DNA of 42,824 bases from Prasinococcaceae sp. CCMP 1430. Taxonomy: Eukaryota; Plantae; Prasinodermophyta. Position numbers and translations under genes: made by a program. Shown here one piece after another: positions 16,552-42,567 of the stretch; position 1 is the stretch's first letter; each line of letters begins with the position of its first letter. Where the stretch lies: assembly GCA_013416795.1 (NCBI GenBank), contig RQSC01000020.1, positions 484,399-527,222 on the forward strand, given 5' to 3'. A model generated the notes under the pieces. That model was given only the letters and a program-made list of their open reading frames with translations. It did not search any database and was not told where the DNA came from.

Positions 16552-17849
16552 TCAGGCCGAGGCGGTCGCCGAGGCCTCGGCGACGTCGATCTGGACGTCT
16601 GCGCACGACTGCCACACCTGCGAGCTCTGCTCGCAATCCCAGCGCCACCCAAGCAGGTAGCGCCCGGGCTCGAGGTCCTCAGGGACCACCACGGTGTCAT
16701 AGATCATCAGTTCGCCGACGGACTTCTGCCCGACGAAGCCGCTGGCGCCGGGCGCCGGCTCGGGGAACTGAGTGTTGCCAGTGCAGCCCTGCGGGCGCTC
16801 CGTCCCGTTCATGTGCAAAAAGTCGGCCCCGGCACACTCCGAGAGGCAGACCACCTGCTGCAGCCAGGGGTTGTTGGGGATGTCGCTACCCTCTTGCGGC
16901 GGCAGCTCGCCTTCGCCGTACTCCATGCCGCACTTCTCGGCGGTGTGATCATCCCCGCTGCTGTCCTCGCACCACGAGCATCCGGGGATGGGATTGACGG
17001 CCCACTCGCTACCGGCGGGGGTGGTCCCCTCGCTGACGGTGACGCGCTTCACGAGCACCGGCGGCTCGTGCGGTGCACTGGTGTTGACGATGCGCGAGTA
17101 CGCGCCGTTGGCATCGGCGGCAAAGCGCAGCGGCGTGCGCTGGAAGCACTCCTCGGACACCCCCCCGCGCGGCGCGCCCTCGTCCAGCTTGCACAGGCGC
17201 AGCTGGTAGCCGCCTCCGTGGTTCGCGGTGATCGCCCAGGCGACCTCTTGCTCGCTGCCGGCGGTCCACACCACCGGCTGCTTCTCCGGCAGCACGTCGA
17301 GCGCGTCGGCGCCCTGCTCGTAGTAAAACGGCGCCATGCCGCCATTGTTGAGGCGCAGCGGCCCGCCGCCCGCCGCGCCGCACCCCGAGCCGAGGACGGG
17401 CGCCGCCCCTGGCGAGCGCCACGGGCGGTGGCGGCTGAAGTCCGCCGCGCCCCCCTCGACGCCCACGTTGACGGTGCGCGCGTACTGCGGCAGCGTCGGG
17501 CGGTCGACGTTGGCAGGCTGGGAGAAGAAGAGGCAGCCGCCTCCGCAGCAGCCGGCGTCGGGGTCGCGGGGCTCGCGGCGGTGGCCGTGGTGCGCGGCGT
17601 CAGCGTCGTCGCCAACCTCGGAGTACAGCCCGAGGTCACTGGCGTGGTGCGGGGCGTCGACGGAGACGGCGGAGACGGCCGCCCCAGCCGCGTCGACCGG
17701 ATCCGGATCGCCGCGGCAGTACACCCCGGGGGGGCGCACGTCATTGCGCACGCTCGCGGGCACGCGCAGCATGCCGTGCGCGTCCGCGCCCGGGAGGAGG
17801 AGGACGCCCGCCCCCGCCGCCGCCGCCAGCAGCGCGGCGGCCGGGAGCG

Positions 17850-17852
<3 letters not shown>
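16552..17852 (-). CDS. Secreted histidine-brace (LPMO-like) copper protein; start ATG is 1 nt out of frame as assembled
   Basis: Signal peptide (M)ALPAAALLAAAAGAGVLLLPGADA|HGML puts His at residue 1 of the mature chain. Second-His motif WAITANHGGGYQLRLC and C-terminal PGRYLLGWRWDCEQSSQVWQSCADV are present. Confidence 0.75.
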
Positions 17853-17905
<53 letters not shown>

Positions 17906-17912
17906 CGCGTGT
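17852..17912. repeat. (TG)n-(CG)n microsatellite abutting the LPMO-like start
   Basis: About (TG)22 followed by CG runs. On the coding strand it reads ...CACACAC-ATG. Confidence 0.95.
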
Positions 17913-18032
17913 GTGCGCGCGCGCTACGCGTGCTCTGCCAGCGCGCTGGCGGCTCTTCCGCCCGCGCGCGCGCCCCGCGGCGCCACACGCCACCCGCGCG
18001 CACGCCTGTGCACGCGCATTCGCTTTGATATG

Positions 18033-18210
18033 AAATGTACACACGTGTGGTCGCACACCATTTCTATTGCCGGGGTGCCACTATGCCTGAATCCTTTTTT
18101 TTATTTTTAATTTATTTTAATTTTAATTTTTAATTTTTTGATACGAAATGTACACACGTGTGGTCACACACCGTTTCTATTGCGTTTTTTTTTTATTTTT
18201 AATTTATTTT
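18033..18210. promoter_or_regulatory. AT-rich island with two copies of a 38-bp G-box-containing palindromic module plus T-tract
   Basis: aaatgtacacacgtgtggtc(g/a)cacacc(a/g)tttctattgc at 18033-18070 and 18146-18183 (36/38 identical), each followed by ttttttttatttttaatttatttt. It lies between divergent genes. Confidence 0.6.
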
Positions 18211-35484: not shown

Positions 35485-36053
35485 TGGCGGCGCTGCCCGT
35501 CGAGGCCTCGGACATCCCGCGCGGCCGCAGGACGGCGCGCCGCCCCGTCGCGAGCGCGCTGGCGGCGGTGCCGAAGACGCCCAACGCGCCCGCGTCGGCG
35601 CCCAAGAAGCGCAAGGCCGCCACGAGCCCCGGCCCGGCCAAGCCGCCGAAGAAGCGCGCGGCGCCCAAGAAGGCGGCGGTGCCCGCGACCACCGACACGA
35701 GCGGGCTCAGCCTGCTGCTCGACGCGGTCCAGGAGGTCTCGGGCAAGGGCCTCGGCGCCGACCTCGACGACGGCATGCCCGGCATCACGCCGTCGAGCAA
35801 GCGCGTGGACGCTCCCGAAATGCCGTCGCCGCCGCAGCGCTCCGGCTCGGCCAAGGCCGCCGCCAAGCCGCCGCCGCCGCCGTCGCCGAAGAGCGAGGCG
35901 CTCCGCGCGGCGCAGCTCGCCGCGGCCGAGGCCGCGGTGAACGCGCGCATCGCCGCGGCCATCAGGGCGTCCACCTCGGACGTGAACGCCGCGTCGGGGG
36001 CCGCGACGGCGGCCGTCGAGGGCCAGGGGAGCCAGCGCGCTTGTGTACGCTAG
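35485..36053 (+). CDS. Fragment of a Lys/Pro/Ala-rich, probably nuclear protein (5' in gap; likely continues at 38617)
   Basis: NLS-like PKKRK..KPPKKRAAPKK, GLSLLLDAV motif and typical codon usage. Ends TAAVEGQGS-QRACVR*. Confidence 0.6.
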
Positions 36054-36179
36054 CATGTGATGCGCGCGTACGAGGGGTAGCGGTACCCACGCACGCGAGG
36101 TCTGCTTGGGTGCAGTGCATGCCTGTGTGTATGATGGTACGAGCGCCTACGCTGGATGCACCCATGCTCGGGCGCGCAC

Positions 36180-36620
36180 CTGTCGACGTCGTCTTCTGTG
36201 ATGGGTGGCGCCCCAACGGCCGCTAGCCGCTCGCGCAGCGCGACCTCGAGCTGTACGGCCATCGAGCGCATAGGCGCTCCGCCGCCGGTGCCACGCGCGC
36301 GCGGCGCAAGGGCGGGGTCGGCGCGCAGCGTCACAAGACCGGGCATGACGCCTCGAGCGCGAGCCGGCGCCACTTCAACCGGCTCCAGCGCCTTGCAGCC
36401 CCGCACTCACCCACCCGCCCGCCCACAACAGCACTCACACCGCTCGCTCGCACTCGCGTGCGGGCCGAGCCCGCCCGCGGCGCGCAGCCCGCCCGGCGCG
36501 CGCGTTCTGGCGCGGGGCGGCGGGCACGGCCGGGAGAGAGAGTGGATGCAAGGAGCGAGGGGGCATCACAGGGGGAAGTGGGGAATCGCCGCCCGCGCCT
36601 GAGTACGCCCGCACTGGCAT
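36180..36620 (-). CDS. Possible 5' exons of a gene truncated near 36033
   Basis: ALEPVEVAP...LEVALRERLAAVGAPPITEDDVD followed by a good donor AG|GTGCGC at 36179. An upstream ATG-initiated Pro/Arg-rich stretch is present. No plausible 3' continuation. Confidence 0.3.
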
Positions 36621-37020
36621 GCGCCGGTTCCCCGAGCGCGCGGCAGCGCGCACCGCCGGTGCCGCTTTCGGCGACGAACTGATTGTTTCCCTGATTCCTC
36701 AGCCCTGCCCCAGCTCGTTCGTTACTTTTCCCCCTTCCCCACCCCCGCATTGTAATTTGATGTGACGAAATAGTACTGTATGCTCTCCGTGGAGGAGCGA
36801 TTGAGATGTGTTGGAGACGCGCACCTGTTCCGCCCGCTGGGGGCGCCGCGCCCGTGCGCTTCAGGCGCGGGGCTCGGCCGTCTCAGTGCTATCCACGTGC
36901 GTTAATATTACTATCTATGTGTACATGGCGCGCACGTCCCGCGCGAGGCGCCTGCCCCTTCCCTCTCTTCCCCCGGGGCCTGCCCACTAGCTACACTAGC
37001 CGGCGCTACCAGCGCGCGCT

Positions 37021-37665
37021 TTACTCAACAGCAGCCTCAGCAGGCACGGCCTCGGCCTCGACTTCAGAGGGGGCAGCCTCGGCCTCGGCCTCGGCGACGG
37101 GCTCAGTAGGTGCGGCCGCGGCCTCGGGGGCTGGCGCCTCCTCAGCGGCGGCATCGGGCTCGGGGGTCCCGGCTTCAGGCTCTTCCGCGGCGGGAGCGGG
37201 CTCCTCGGCAGCAGCCTCCTCAGCAGCAGGCACGGCCTCGTCGACAGCAGGCGCGTCCTCCTCAGCAGGAGCAGCCTCCTCGGCGGCGGGCTCCTCAGCA
37301 GCGGGAGCAGCCTCCTCGGCGGCGGGCTCCTCAGCAGCGGGGGCAGCCTCCTCGGCGGCGGGCTCCTCAGCAGCGGGAGCAGCCTCCTCGGCGGCGGGCT
37401 CCTCAGCAGCGGGGGCAGCCTCCTCGGCGGCGGGCTCCTCAGCAGCGGGAGCAGCCTCCTCGGCGGCGGGCTCCTCAGCAGCGGGGGCAGCCTCCTCGGC
37501 GGCGGGCTCCTCAGCAGCGGGAGCAGCCTCCTCGGCGGCGGGCTCCTCAGCAGCGGGGGCAGCCTCCTCGGCGGCGGGCTCCTCAGCAGCGGGAGCAGCC
37601 TCCTCGGCGGCGGGCTCCTCAGCAGCGGGGGCAGCCTCCTCGGCGGCGGGCTCCTCAGCAGCGGG
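37021..37665 (-). CDS. 3' end of an acidic Ala/Glu/Pro-rich repeat protein, (PAAEEPAAEEAA)n; 5' in gap
   Basis: 36-bp coding repeat, at least 11 copies up to the gap, with a degenerate tail to TAA at 37021-37023. Confidence 0.65.
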   Translation of the reverse strand, partial: PAAEEPAAEEAAPAAEEPAAEEAAPAAEEPAAEEAAPAAEEPAAEEAAPAAEEPAAEEAAPAAEEPAAEEAAPAAEEPAAEEAAPAAEEPAAEEAAPAAEEPAAEEAAPAAEEPAAEEAAPAAEEPAAEEAAPAEEDAPAVDEAVPAAEEAAAEEPAPAAEEPEAGTPEPDAAAEEAPAPEAAAAPTEPVAEAEAEAAPSEVEAEAVPAEAAVE

Positions 37666-38588
37666 NNNNNNNNNNNNNNNNNNNNNNNNNNNNNNNNNNN
37701 NNNNNNNNNNNNNNNNNNNNNNNNNNNNNNNNNNNNNNNNNNNNNNNNNNNNNNNNNNNNNNNNNNNNNNNNNNNNNNNNNNNNNNNNNNNNNNNNNNNN
37801 NNNNNNNNNNNNNNNNNNNNNNNNNNNNNNNNNNNNNNNNNNNNNNNNNNNNNNNNNNNNNNNNNNNNNNNNNNNNNNNNNNNNNNNNNNNNNNNNNNNN
37901 NNNNNNNNNNNNNNNNNNNNNNNNNNNNNNNNNNNNNNNNNNNNNNNNNNNNNNNNNNNNNNNNNNNNNNNNNNNNNNNNNNNNNNNNNNNNNNNNNNNN
38001 NNNNNNNNNNNNNNNNNNNNNNNNNNNNNNNNNNNNNNNNNNNNNNNNNNNNNNNNNNNNNNNNNNNNNNNNNNNNNNNNNNNNNNNNNNNNNNNNNNNN
38101 NNNNNNNNNNNNNNNNNNNNNNNNNNNNNNNNNNNNNNNNNNNNNNNNNNNNNNNNNNNNNNNNNNNNNNNNNNNNNNNNNNNNNNNNNNNNNNNNNNNN
38201 NNNNNNNNNNNNNNNNNNNNNNNNNNNNNNNNNNNNNNNNNNNNNNNNNNNNNNNNNNNNNNNNNNNNNNNNNNNNNNNNNNNNNNNNNNNNNNNNNNNN
38301 NNNNNNNNNNNNNNNNNNNNNNNNNNNNNNNNNNNNNNNNNNNNNNNNNNNNNNNNNNNNNNNNNNNNNNNNNNNNNNNNNNNNNNNNNNNNNNNNNNNN
38401 NNNNNNNNNNNNNNNNNNNNNNNNNNNNNNNNNNNNNNNNNNNNNNNNNNNNNNNNNNNNNNNNNNNNNNNNNNNNNNNNNNNNNNNNNNNNNNNNNNNN
38501 NNNNNNNNNNNNNNNNNNNNNNNNNNNNNNNNNNNNNNNNNNNNNNNNNNNNNNNNNNNNNNNNNNNNNNNNNNNNNNNNNNNNNNNN

Positions 38589-39195
38589 GACGGCGGCCGT
38601 CGAGGGCCAGGGGAGCGCCGACGGCAGCGACGCCCGCCTCCCTGCCGCCGCCCGGCGCCTCGCGCCCGTTCTGCGCGCGGAAGCCGAGCGGCTCGCCGGT
38701 GCCGAGGAGGAGGGGCGGGCGGGCCCCAAGCTCGGGCGCGCGTGGCTGCGGCTCGCGCGCGCGTCCCAGGGCGTCGGCGCGGTCGCCGAGGCGCGCGCAG
38801 CGCTGCTGCGCGCCTGGGGTGTCATGCGCCGCCTGTCGAGCTCGGCCGTCATGCAGCCCGAGGCCATGCTCGCCGCTGGCGAGCAGTTTGCCGCGTTGCT
38901 CGAAGATCAGAACCGCCGGCTCGGCGCCGACGCGGACGGTGCGAGCGGCGGCGCCACCGGCGGCAGCCAGGAGGACGGTGCGGGCGGTGGCGCGGCCGAG
39001 GGCGCCGGGGGCGCAAGCGGCGGCCCCGATGCGGGGATGGACGGCGTGGACGGCAGTGGCGGCGGCGGCGAGGCGGAGGGCAGCGGAGGCGGCGGGAGCG
39101 GCGACGCTGGCGGCGGTGGCGGCAACGCCGGTGCGCCCGCAGGTGAAATGCCCGGTGCCGTGGCCGTGCTGCCACTGGCCATCGCCGCAGCCTAG
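38589..39195 (+). CDS. 3' fragment of a gene (helical segment plus Gly-rich tail), probably the continuation of 35485-36032
   Basis: Open frame TAAVEGQGSADGSDARL...LGRAWLRLARA...LLRAWGVMRRL...AIAAA*. Its first 28 bp are identical to 36005-36032 and in the same coding frame. Confidence 0.6.
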
Positions 39196-39755
39196 GCGTG
39201 AGCCTGCGCGGCCCTGTGGACGCTGTCCCGTGTGCCCCCCACTCGCCGACCTCAACAGGATCGATTGACGTCGGTGCCTCCCGAGGCGCGCCCGCCTCGA
39301 CCTGACCAGTACACTAGAAGTAGTGACACCGAGACAGGCTGCCGCCCGCATCGGCGCGCGCTCCCAGGAGCGCGCCGCCGGTGCGCGAGGCGCCGCGGTG
39401 CGCTCTCCTTTTCCTTTTTGCTCTGAAGCGTTGCATGATGTATATTCGTAGGTACAGTAACAAGAGTGCTCCACCCGGGCTCAGACGACCAGGCCGGCGC
39501 GCGTGCGCGCAGCCCTTGGGAGGTGGGGCGCGCGAGCGCGAGCGGGCGCCTGTATCATGCGTGCTACTTTCACAAATCGAAATGGTTTGAAAGCGTGGAT
39601 TTGTCTCCCCACGTGCCAGTCGCCGATGGTCGTCGCTGGTAGCCAGAGTCGATGCTCGTGAGAGTGTGCGCGTGTCACAATCATTGGCAGCGCGACGCTT
39701 CGTTGGTCCGAAGTCGATGGTCGTCGAATGGTGATCAGTGTGCACTCGCACACAC

Positions 39756-41102
39756 TCAGCAGTCCTCGCCGTTCCACTGCGCGACCGCCGGCGCCGTCGC
39801 CGTCGCGCTGTCCGACTTGTAGCGCGCCTGGAAGCCGAACGACGTCTGCCACTGCTTGGTCTGGAACTCGAGGAGGGTCCCGCCCGCCTTGTTCACGATC
39901 GTGCCGTCGACGGGCACGGCGTTCCACACCTGCACCAGCTCGAACGCATCCAGCTTGCCAGCTGTCGAGGCCACGAAGACGACCACTTCGTTGCCAGCGC
40001 TGTCGTCCGGAAGCTTCGCCGCCTCAACGATGAAGTGCTGCCACTCGCCCTGACTCCACGTGGACGGTTGCATGCCAATCTTGGCGCCGCAGTTGTCGCC
40101 GCCCGAGCCGCCGCCGCTGGGCTCTTCCACCGGCGCGTCCACCGCCTCCTCGGCGGGTGGCTCAGCTGGCTCTTCGACGGGCTGCGCCGCTGGCTCTTCC
40201 ACGGGTTGTTCGACCGGCGCGTCCGCGGGCTGGGCGGTAGGCTCCGGCTCCGGCGCGGGCGTGCCGTCTGCCTGAGGCTCCTCGGACGGCGCTGCCTGCT
40301 GCTGCCCACCGATTGTGACATCGATGCAGTTCCAAAACTGCTCCGGTCCGGTGCTGCCGGTCGGATCGAGCACCGCCGGGCAGTCGCCCATGGACGCAGG
40401 CCCCCACCAGTCCGAGCTCGGATACGGGTAGTCGTGGTAGCCTGCGTGGTTGCATGAGTTCCCGGTGATGTAGCGCCACTGGAGGATGACGTTGCCGGTC
40501 ACCCCCTCGGGCAGGCGAAACTTGTGCGTGAAGGGCATGCCTGGGCTGTCGGCCGTCGTGTATCCGCTGGCCGCCTGGCCGGTGTTGGGCGCCACGTACG
40601 CGCGGCCCGGGTGGTTGGGGTCCTTGGGAGCGCCGTACAGCTCGTCGCTCACGAACTCGAGCGGGTGAGCCGCGAAGCACCCCTGCGAGGGGCTGAGGTC
40701 GGCGCAGGCGAACATCTCGAAGTGGCCCTGGTGGTGGGCGGTCAGGCGGGACTTGACGGTGATCACGGCGCCCTCCTCGTAGTGCGCCTGGGGGCGGAAG
40801 GGCAGCGGCTGTCCCTCCCAGTTCTTGGGCACGTCGTACACGGTCTTCTCCACCTGGGTGATGCCGCAGATGCCCGAGCCGAACTGGTCGGAGCCGCGGT
40901 TCAAGCAGTGCGCGCAGTTCTCCGGCGCCGGGATGAGGGCCACCGCCGCCGCGTCCTGTCCGGGGGCGACCCACCACTCCCCGTCCTGCTCGGCGACGTA
41001 GTTCCGCGAGCGCGGCTCGGTGCACATGCCGTGCGCGTCGGCGCGCGGCGCGAGCCCCGCGCAGGCGAGCAGCGCCGCGGCGAGCCGGAGGGAGCGCGGC
41101 AT
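39756..41102 (-). CDS. Secreted AA15/AA10-like lytic polysaccharide monooxygenase with a Pro/Glu linker and a CBM2-like module, 448 aa
   Basis: 23-aa signal peptide ending ADA|HGMCTEPRSRN (His1). Motifs LTAHHQGHFEMFAC, LQWRYITGNSC and GPEQFWNCIDV. Linker EEPAAQPVEEP. The C-terminal module C...W..G...QVWNA...W..SFGFQ...NGEDC fits the CBM2 pattern. Confidence 0.85.
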   Translation of the reverse strand: MPRSLRLAAALLACAGLAPRADAHGMCTEPRSRNYVAEQDGEWWVAPGQDAAAVALIPAPENCAHCLNRGSDQFGSGICGITQVEKTVYDVPKNWEGQPLPFRPQAHYEEGAVITVKSRLTAHHQGHFEMFACADLSPSQGCFAAHPLEFVSDELYGAPKDPNHPGRAYVAPNTGQAASGYTTADSPGMPFTHKFRLPEGVTGNVILQWRYITGNSCNHAGYHDYPYPSSDWWGPASMGDCPAVLDPTGSTGPEQFWNCIDVTIGGQQQAAPSEEPQADGTPAPEPEPTAQPADAPVEQPVEEPAAQPVEEPAEPPAEEAVDAPVEEPSGGGSGGDNCGAKIGMQPSTWSQGEWQHFIVEAAKLPDDSAGNEVVVFVASTAGKLDAFELVQVWNAVPVDGTIVNKAGGTLLEFQTKQWQTSFGFQARYKSDSATATAPAVAQWNGEDC

Positions 41103-41204
41103 GAGTGGGTGTGCCGCCCCGCGCGCGGCGCGGCGGCGCCCGCGCGGCGAGCTGCCGCTGAAACGAGGACACTCTGGCCGCTTTCGATGAGTGCGCGCTC
41201 ATGG

Positions 41205-41287
41205 CACACACGCACACACACACGCACACACACACACACACGCACGCACGTGCGCACGCACGTGCACACGCACACACACACGCACGT

Positions 41288-41345
<58 letters not shown>

Positions 41346-41356
41346 GCGCACACACT
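41205..41356. repeat. (CA)n microsatellite 5' of the LPMO-CBM gene
   Basis: Directly visible. On the minus strand it lies between a GT donor-like site near 41362 and the acceptor-like TCGTTTCAG near 41158. Confidence 0.95.
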
Positions 41357-41710
41357 CGCACACCCTGCGCACGACGCTGTGCGCGCGCTCATCGGCCGCG
41401 CGCGCGCTCCGCCTCGGAGCGCGCCTCGAAAGTCAACGCCGTCATCGCGAAGGGGCGCGCCGCCGCGCCCCTTCGGCGTGGCCCAATCGCGCACGTTAAG
41501 GTTTTCAGAGCGCGTTTTAGGGTTTCCGCGCCAGTGCGAGCGCTCCCAGGGGGCGCTGCGAAGCCTTTTTGGCGTCGGTGCGGAGCGAACCCTGACGCGT
41601 GCGTTTTGATGGCGGGCGCGCGGGCGCGCGAAAAGGGGTTCGAAAGCGTCGGAGGCGGCGCCGAAAGCGCTGGAGGCGCCACAGCGCGCGCGCACGCGCG
41701 GGCGCGGGCG

Positions 41711-41723
41711 TGCGTGTGCGTGC

Positions 41724-41785
<62 letters not shown>

Positions 41786-41840
41786 CTGTGTGCACCTGTG
41801 TGTGTGCGTGTGTGTGTGTGTGTGTGCGTGTGTGCGCGTG
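41711..41840. repeat. (TG)n microsatellite 5' of the small plus-strand gene
   Basis: Directly visible. Confidence 0.95.
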
Positions 41841-42495: not shown

Positions 42496-42567
42496 TGCGC
42501 CGGCCGGGAATCGAACCCGGATCCCGAACTTGGAAGGTTCATATCCTAGCCATTGGACTACCGGCGC
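42496..42567 (-). tRNA. tRNA-Gly (anticodon TCC)
   Basis: Folds by hand: acceptor GCGCCGG/CCGGCGC+A; D arm GTCC-AATGGCTA-GGAT; anticodon arm TGAAC-CTTCCAA-GTTCG; T arm CCGGG-TTCGATT-CCCGG. 72 nt, no intron. Confidence 0.97.

Follow-up and report, generated by a model that had tools for sequence, protein, structure and literature searches.

An AA15-type LPMO with a predicted CBM2-like C-terminal module, encoded by an intronless gene on a Prasinococcaceae contig

The window, a stretch of 42,824 nucleotides from contig RQSC01000020.1 of Prasinococcaceae sp. CCMP 1430 (assembly GCA_013416795.1), carries an LPMO gene on its minus strand, as one unbroken open reading frame (39756-41102) that runs from ATG to TGA and encodes 448 aa (Table 1). 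A sequence-only reading of this DNA had described a signal peptide, a His1 catalytic domain, an acidic Pro linker and a Cys-bounded, Trp-rich module, and every motif that it quoted is in place: TAHHQGHFE (residues 121-129), LQWRYITGNSC (207-217) and PEQFWNCIDV (253-262) in the catalytic domain, and QVWNA (391-395) and FGFQ (422-425) in the module. Its description of the gene as intronless holds for the window copy, because the gene is uninterrupted relative to its homologs.

Table 1. Parts of the LPMO gene and its product, in window coordinates
Feature	Residues	Coordinates	Strand	Basis or remark
Signal peptide, MPRSLRLAAALLACAGLAPRADA	1-23	41034..41102	(-)	Read from sequence
AA15-type LPMO catalytic domain	24-266	40305..41033	(-)	PF03067 and 5msz matches
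Acidic Pro/Glu/Ala-rich linker, GGGSGGDN at end	267-337	40092..40304	(-)	Composition
C-terminal all-beta module	338-448	39759..40091	(-)	Predicted CBM2-like fold, putative polysaccharide binder
Stop codon TGA		39756..39758	(-)	Read from ORF

The flanks are those of a eukaryotic nuclear contig, with a WDR11-like gene, a gene for a 1964-aa protein kinase, a hybrid histidine kinase gene, a tRNA-Gly gene and (GT)n microsatellites. Immediately before the ATG of the LPMO gene, on its upstream side, come the long (GT)n/(CA)n microsatellites (41200-41370 and 41650-41800), and beyond them is the tRNA-Gly(TCC) gene (42496-42567, minus strand). On the other side a plus-strand gene ending at 39195 stands tail-to-tail with the LPMO gene, leaving a spacer of about 560 bases (39195-39756). 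A Tara scaffold (L002) independently matches the locus at 98.7% identity. Scaffold and window run collinearly to either side (98.7% and 99.8%) of window positions 36033-38588 (2.5 kb), which the scaffold omits and where the window has a long Ser/Ala-rich tandem repeat (about 37000-37660) and a gap of Ns (37666-38588); this discrepancy reflects either a difference in repeat length or an assembly artefact in one of the two sequences. The plus-strand neighbour is called on the scaffold as a 347-residue product across the repeat/gap region, and the scaffold's first 238 bases, which lie upstream of the start codon, have no counterpart in the alignment to the window. Elsewhere in the window (16555-18042, minus strand) is another LPMO-like ORF, a divergent one, with an HG start after a hydrophobic leader and a PF03067 score of 22.5 against the cut-off of 23 bits (residues 246-308).

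The leader MPRSLRLAAALLACAGLAPRADA is a hydrophobic stretch of 23 residues, ends in ADA (...APRADA) and is followed directly by His24. Cleavage is predicted after Ala23, which would make His24 residue 1 of the mature protein; in our alignment His24 is the first aligned residue and is invariant in 21 homologs, each with a hydrophobic leader before it. Among the 71 residues of the linker are 16 Pro, 18 Asp/Glu and 13 Ala, with no Lys or Arg at all. The linker has no domain match in Pfam/NCBIfam, save a sub-threshold 'PT disordered repeat', and its pLDDT lies below 50 in a single-sequence AlphaFold model of the whole protein, a model that at an overall pLDDT of 40 is too poor for use. The module has five Trp (349, 354, 393, 418 and 443) and two Cys only, Cys338 and Cys448, which are the first and last of its 111 residues.

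The earlier identification of a secreted, modular AA15-type LPMO is borne out. The Pfam LPMO_10 profile (PF03067) is matched far above its cut-off (57.3 bits vs 23, E 4.3e-15), with residues 24-262 covering profile positions 1-183 of 183. A single-sequence search of the PDB gave a sole match, the AA15 enzyme TdAA15A of Thermobia domestica (5msz, E 7e-5). When a profile of 21 homologous catalytic domains (A5) was used instead, TdAA15A was matched at E 1.3e-17, while the best AA10 chains (4oy7, 7ze9) reached just E 0.14-0.26; the catalytic domain is therefore AA15-type and not AA10-type.

The alignments place His24, Ala122, His124 and Phe256 on His1, Ala89, His91 and Tyr184 of TdAA15A, so that His24 and His124 would form the histidine brace, together with Ala122 and an axial Phe256. 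Eight Cys of the catalytic domain are conserved, and a ninth, Cys27, is not. The axial Phe is nearly invariant across the algal clade (21-homolog alignment). In TdAA15A, active on cellulose and chitin, the axial residue is a Tyr; in TdAA15B, which is chitin-specific, and in most AA10s active on chitin it is a Phe (PMC5823890). With Ala122, His124 and an axial Phe256, the active site of the window protein is of the chitin-type variant, and the gene encodes a real and probably functional secreted AA15 LPMO of the chitin type, presumably copper-dependent.

About 40 homologs, 36-54% identical, were retrieved; their sources are marine metagenomes, MMETSP transcriptomes and the diatoms Skeletonema and Aulacoseira. 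In many of 35 catalytic-domain homologs the LPMO domain is followed by CBM14, CBM18 and/or GH18; all of these partner domains are chitin-related, and none is cellulose-specific. Maximum-likelihood analysis puts the window protein beside its sister P0002, and an LPMO-CBM14 protein (P0052) next to the pair as their closest outgroup (support 85/92). Active-site type and partner domains together point to chitin as the substrate, an inference that is weighed against cellulose below. Seven giant-virus contigs in IMG/VR (L124, L125, L127, L129, L133, L137 and L138), 288-369 kb long and so of chlorovirus size, code for full-length relatives of the algal domain of AA15 type; with just 23-29% identity in these relatives, we consider a viral origin unlikely.

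The C-terminal module is an orphan in sequence searches. Pfam and NCBIfam gave no relevant match at E<=10, whether queried with the module alone, with linker plus module or with five family members. Neither the module nor four relatives matched the CBM2 profile (PF00553, gathering score 24 bits) at E<=10, nor did the module match the CBM49 profile (PF09478) at that threshold. Sequence and profile searches of the PDB with the module returned chance-level matches alone (DCC FN3 and PCPE CUB, E 0.1-1). When 1.84 billion representative proteins were searched exhaustively with phmmer, relatives of the module came from two lineages only, both from Tara Oceans assemblies, and no bacterial relative was among them. 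One lineage is the P0001 cluster, 99% identical to the window protein, whose exact sequence is absent from the public collection searched; the presence of the gene at this identity in Tara Oceans metagenome assemblies places the organism in the sampled ocean. The other, hereafter the sister lineage (P0002, P0046-P0048), has a module about 72% identical. Three further phmmer matches (P0049-P0051) were rejected as repetitive, unrelated proteins. A module HMM found no further copy outside the two lineages among 82 LPMO-related proteins, and no second copy in the six-frame translation of the window.

The sister lineage shares the whole LPMO-linker-module architecture (~72% identity) and keeps both Cys338 and Cys448. 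Its members (P0002, P0046, P0047 and P0048) also have, within one loop of the module, a (GDVAGDYAT)-like peptide repeated in tandem, in copy numbers that differ among metagenome variants; the window protein has STAG only at the equivalent position (window 39950-39965).

The sister ortholog on a Tara contig (L001; protein 63% identical) has canonical GT-AG introns, and the window gene has none. One intron of about 300 bp (618-914) follows the EWWVPPGGDPM exon, and another of about 110 bp (1523-1635) falls within the FWN|C codon and contains a CTAAC branch site. Gene calling on the metagenome ran through the latter intron, which produced the spurious insert WYGRITHARAAS... in P0002. Just upstream of the GMCTSPRSRN exon, L001:440-535 holds branch-point-like repeats of the CTGAC/CTGACC type, and at the end of this run stands a TAG|GC acceptor, set one base inside the Gly codon that follows His1. 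The sister gene's signal-peptide exon (exon 1) was not located on L001. The GT-AG introns of the sister imply a resident eukaryotic gene, of which the window copy lost the introns or never gained them.

These results bear on the source of the gene. An intronless gene, high GC and the pairing of an LPMO with a CBM2, the last two both typical of actinobacteria, could suggest that the module or the whole gene came recently from bacteria, or that the contig is a bacterial contaminant. We consider this very improbable, and largely refuted. The phmmer search of 1.84 billion representatives gave no bacterial relative of the module, and the catalytic domain is of AA15 type, not AA10. GC3 is 0.915 in the module and 0.936 in the catalytic part, matching nearby eukaryotic genes (amine oxidase, TrmA-like and histidine kinase, 0.83-0.91), and the sister has both the module and GT-AG introns. 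The proposal of a horizontally acquired CBM accordingly finds no support, and we see no sign in the sequences of recent horizontal acquisition of the module. Contamination, which the sequence-only reading had named as a case against itself, is likewise contradicted, as far as bacterial DNA is concerned, by the eukaryotic flanks, the sister introns and the independent Tara scaffold at 98.7%. As to which eukaryote, Tara proteins match the neighbouring amine oxidase at 97% and 65% identity; among named sources Ostreococcus tauri comes first (50%), and Chlorokybus and Micractinium follow (47%). The earlier phrase 'in an alga' is partly borne out, by a eukaryotic nuclear contig and by this best named relative of the neighbour gene.

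For the fold of the module, an AlphaFold (AF2) model was built on a five-sequence alignment from the two lineages, and it shows eight strands at moderate confidence (pLDDT 65, pTM 0.63). When this model was compared with the PDB by Foldseek, ranks 1-7 were all CBM2 domains (E 2e-3 to 2e-2, probability 0.97-1.00), at TM values of just 0.31-0.41. They comprise five different domains, two cellulose-binding and three chitin-binding: C. fimi CBM2a (6qfs, rank 1), C. cellulovorans EngD (3ndy_E), 2rtt, 5dhd and 5dhe. Of these, 2rtt is the ChBD of S. coelicolor Chi18aC, and 5dhd and 5dhe are ChBD2/3 of T. kodakarensis. Further CBM2 entries (1e5b, 1xbd, 2cwr and 1heh) stand at lower ranks; throughout, assignment of entries to CBM2 follows CAZy.

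VIA structural alignment was less selective. With 1xbd/2xbd it aligned 86 of 87 residues at 2.9 A, with 2cwr 93 of 97 at 3.1 A (Z 6.6-6.8), and it gave slightly higher Z (7.0-7.7, 103-115 residues aligned) for pilin domains, DUF4466 and cohesins. Differences of less than 1 in Z make CBM2 and the cohesins or pilins a tie by this method.

Sequence comparison with CBM2 required a control set, which we obtained by scanning bacterial genomes with a degenerate DNA pattern. This yielded 28 domains, all 28 of which pass PF00553 (best E 1.7e-37), and the set was widened to 114 domains from the same loci as these verified 28. Local hhalign of the module family against the 114-domain profile scored 17.6 with P 0.019, at low alignment confidence, and 2 of 200 column shuffles reached this score. 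The register lays query positions 12-118 on CBM2 positions 6-102, and at this same P it puts module Trp19, Trp63 and Trp88 (Trp349, Trp393 and Trp418 of the protein) on the three invariant Trp columns of CBM2; it also pairs FGF with FGF, a Pro with the invariant Pro, and last Cys with last Cys. The global mode of hhalign came out of register and with a worse score, and the local mode with a low MAC threshold was used instead. Against an HMM of the 114 CBM2 domains the module scored 6.2 bits, which 37 of 2000 shuffles also reached; for the module of the sister lineage the result was not significant. In CBM2a, three Trp form a planar binding face. Like a CBM2, the module is of about 100 residues with a Cys at each terminus, and a Cys338-Cys448 disulfide probably closes it.

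How, then, should the module be classed? The sequence-only reading called it CBM2-like. Modelled fold and key positions do resemble CBM2, and no CBM profile is matched even at E<=10, so that the module should not be filed as CBM2. The model supports a CBM2-like fold, and the module may be a remote relative of the CBM2/CBM49 class. Two of the verified bacterial CBM2 domains also match PF09478, which makes a vertically inherited relative in the green lineage conceivable.

A rather unlikely alternative is that the module is no CBM at all: as a generic beta-sandwich, like those of cohesins, pilins or Ig domains, it would instead fix the enzyme to the cell surface or to a partner protein. This would suit the slightly higher VIA scores of pilins, DUF4466 and cohesins, the lack of a CBM profile match and the marginal nature of the CBM2 sequence evidence. 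But those Z differences are ties, and Foldseek, which uses residue information too, puts CBM2 at ranks 1-7. The terminal Cys pair, the FGF and the three Trp are moreover in register with invariant CBM2 positions, and the order of LPMO, linker and terminal module is the standard one for LPMO-CBM proteins (PMC10154629).

We judge a secreted AA15-type LPMO with a CBM2-like module, acting most likely on chitin, to be the best explanation of the locus, and a reasonably probable one. Removal of the signal peptide would expose His24, which with His124 would hold Cu, and Ala122 and the non-coordinating axial Phe256 would complete a chitin-type active site. The 71-residue linker would tether this flat-faced oxidase to the predicted 111-residue beta-sandwich. 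By means of this module the enzyme would stay attached to a crystalline beta-1,4 glycan (chitin most likely, cellulose less so), whose chains would be oxidised and broken by the reduced copper centre with O2 or H2O2. Copper binding, carbohydrate binding and substrate are what we infer for the window LPMO, and its role would be in remodelling the cell's own covering or in attacking external chitin.

The substrate could instead be cellulose, or another non-chitin beta-glucan of the alga's own wall, with the module as a cellulose binder of the CBM2a type. Foldseek rank 1 is indeed the cellulose-binding CBM2a of Cellulomonas fimi, the three aligned Trp match the CBM2a set, and TdAA15A attacks cellulose as well as chitin (PMC5823890). 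We nevertheless think this improbable, since the axial Phe and Ala122 make a chitin-type site, the partners found among relatives (CBM14, CBM18, GH18) are all chitin-related with none specific to cellulose, and several of the top CBM2 structural matches bind chitin (2rtt, 5dhd, 5dhe, 2cwr). The GC content here resembles the 69.8% of Prasinoderma coloniale, whose genome is reported to have no cellulose-synthesis genes and very few chitosan-related genes (PMC7455551); in a host of that kind either substrate would be less certain.

Returning to the proposed chitin-active LPMO, a more speculative extension, possible though we would not favour it, is that its tail represents a eukaryote-resident, extremely diverged branch of the CBM2/CBM49 fold class, evolved in one small group of marine green picoalgae or captured by it long ago, and that the enzyme oxidises chitin. 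If so, a phototroph would bind and oxidatively open crystalline chitin in the sea, using external chitin as a source of N and C or acting on a hitherto unrecognised chitin-like layer of its own covering.

AA15 LPMOs have been characterised in insects and oomycetes. For algae we know of sequence surveys only, and of no algal AA15 enzyme with known substrate or role. The class itself and its presence in algae are not new: a 2018 paper described AA15 genes from Chlorophyta, diatoms, haptophytes and viruses, together with fusions of AA15 to CBM1, CBM14, GH18 and GH19 (Sabbadin et al., PMC5823890). A 2023 review of LPMO modularity gives CBM14 for AA15, and CBM2 for AA10 only (PMC10154629). What appears to be new is the attachment to an AA15 domain of a sequence-orphan module with a modelled CBM2-like fold, in an architecture confined to two marine lineages. 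The window gene offers a clean, intronless and directly expressible algal AA15 with a chitin-type site, and its tail lies outside current CBM catalogues, yet has a predicted fold like that of the Type A binders of bacterial LPMOs. Should the tail bind crystalline chitin or cellulose, the CBM2 fold class would gain a very distant sequence group, and there would be a handle on how marine picoalgae use LPMOs.

Among known systems, CBM49 (PF09478) is a CBM2-related module of plant GH9 endoglucanases and Dictyostelium proteins. It is a eukaryotic branch of the fold class that the window module is predicted to share, and differs in that its profile does not match the module at E<=10. The CBM2 domains themselves (6qfs, 2rtt, 5dhd and 5dhe) are similar in size and in their terminal Cys, and the hhalign alignment places the three Trp, the FGF and the Pro in register, at a sequence identity of just 14-18% and with 6.2 bits from the CBM2 HMM. 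The window module differs from them in lacking WNG after the third Trp and NG after FGF, in an 8-residue deletion between the third Trp and FGF, and in a long insertion after the second strand.

ScLPMO10C (CelS2) of Streptomyces coelicolor acts on cellulose. Like the window protein, it joins an LPMO domain through a flexible linker to a terminal, Cys-bounded beta-sandwich of about 100 aa, a predicted one in the window protein (PMC10154629). Its catalytic domain is AA10, however, a class whose chains the algal profile matches only at E 0.14-0.26, and its CBM2 passes PF00553, which the algal module does not.

On the catalytic side, no solved structure other than TdAA15A (5msz) gave a significant sequence match (family profile, E 1.3e-17). 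Common to TdAA15A and the window protein are His1, the second His with the Ala preceding it, the framework of conserved Cys and the C-terminal motif ...NC..(V/I); TdAA15A differs in its axial Tyr and in its low identity, such that segments only align. In its axial Phe the window protein instead agrees with TdAA15B, the chitin-specific enzyme. Compared with the Thermobia AA15 domains, the algal one has extra loops and about 40 more residues, and the Thermobia sequences consist of a catalytic domain only (PMC5823890).

Closest are the algal and diatom fusions of AA15 to CBM14, CBM18 or GH18 (P0004, P0006, P0052, P0058 and P0061), which belong to the same catalytic clade (36-54% identity) and share the start from signal peptide to His1, the Pro-rich linker and the placement of modules at the C terminus. 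What they carry there is a chitinase or small Type C chitin binders rich in Cys; in the window protein this place is taken by a predicted beta-sandwich of 111 aa with two Cys, found in two lineages only.
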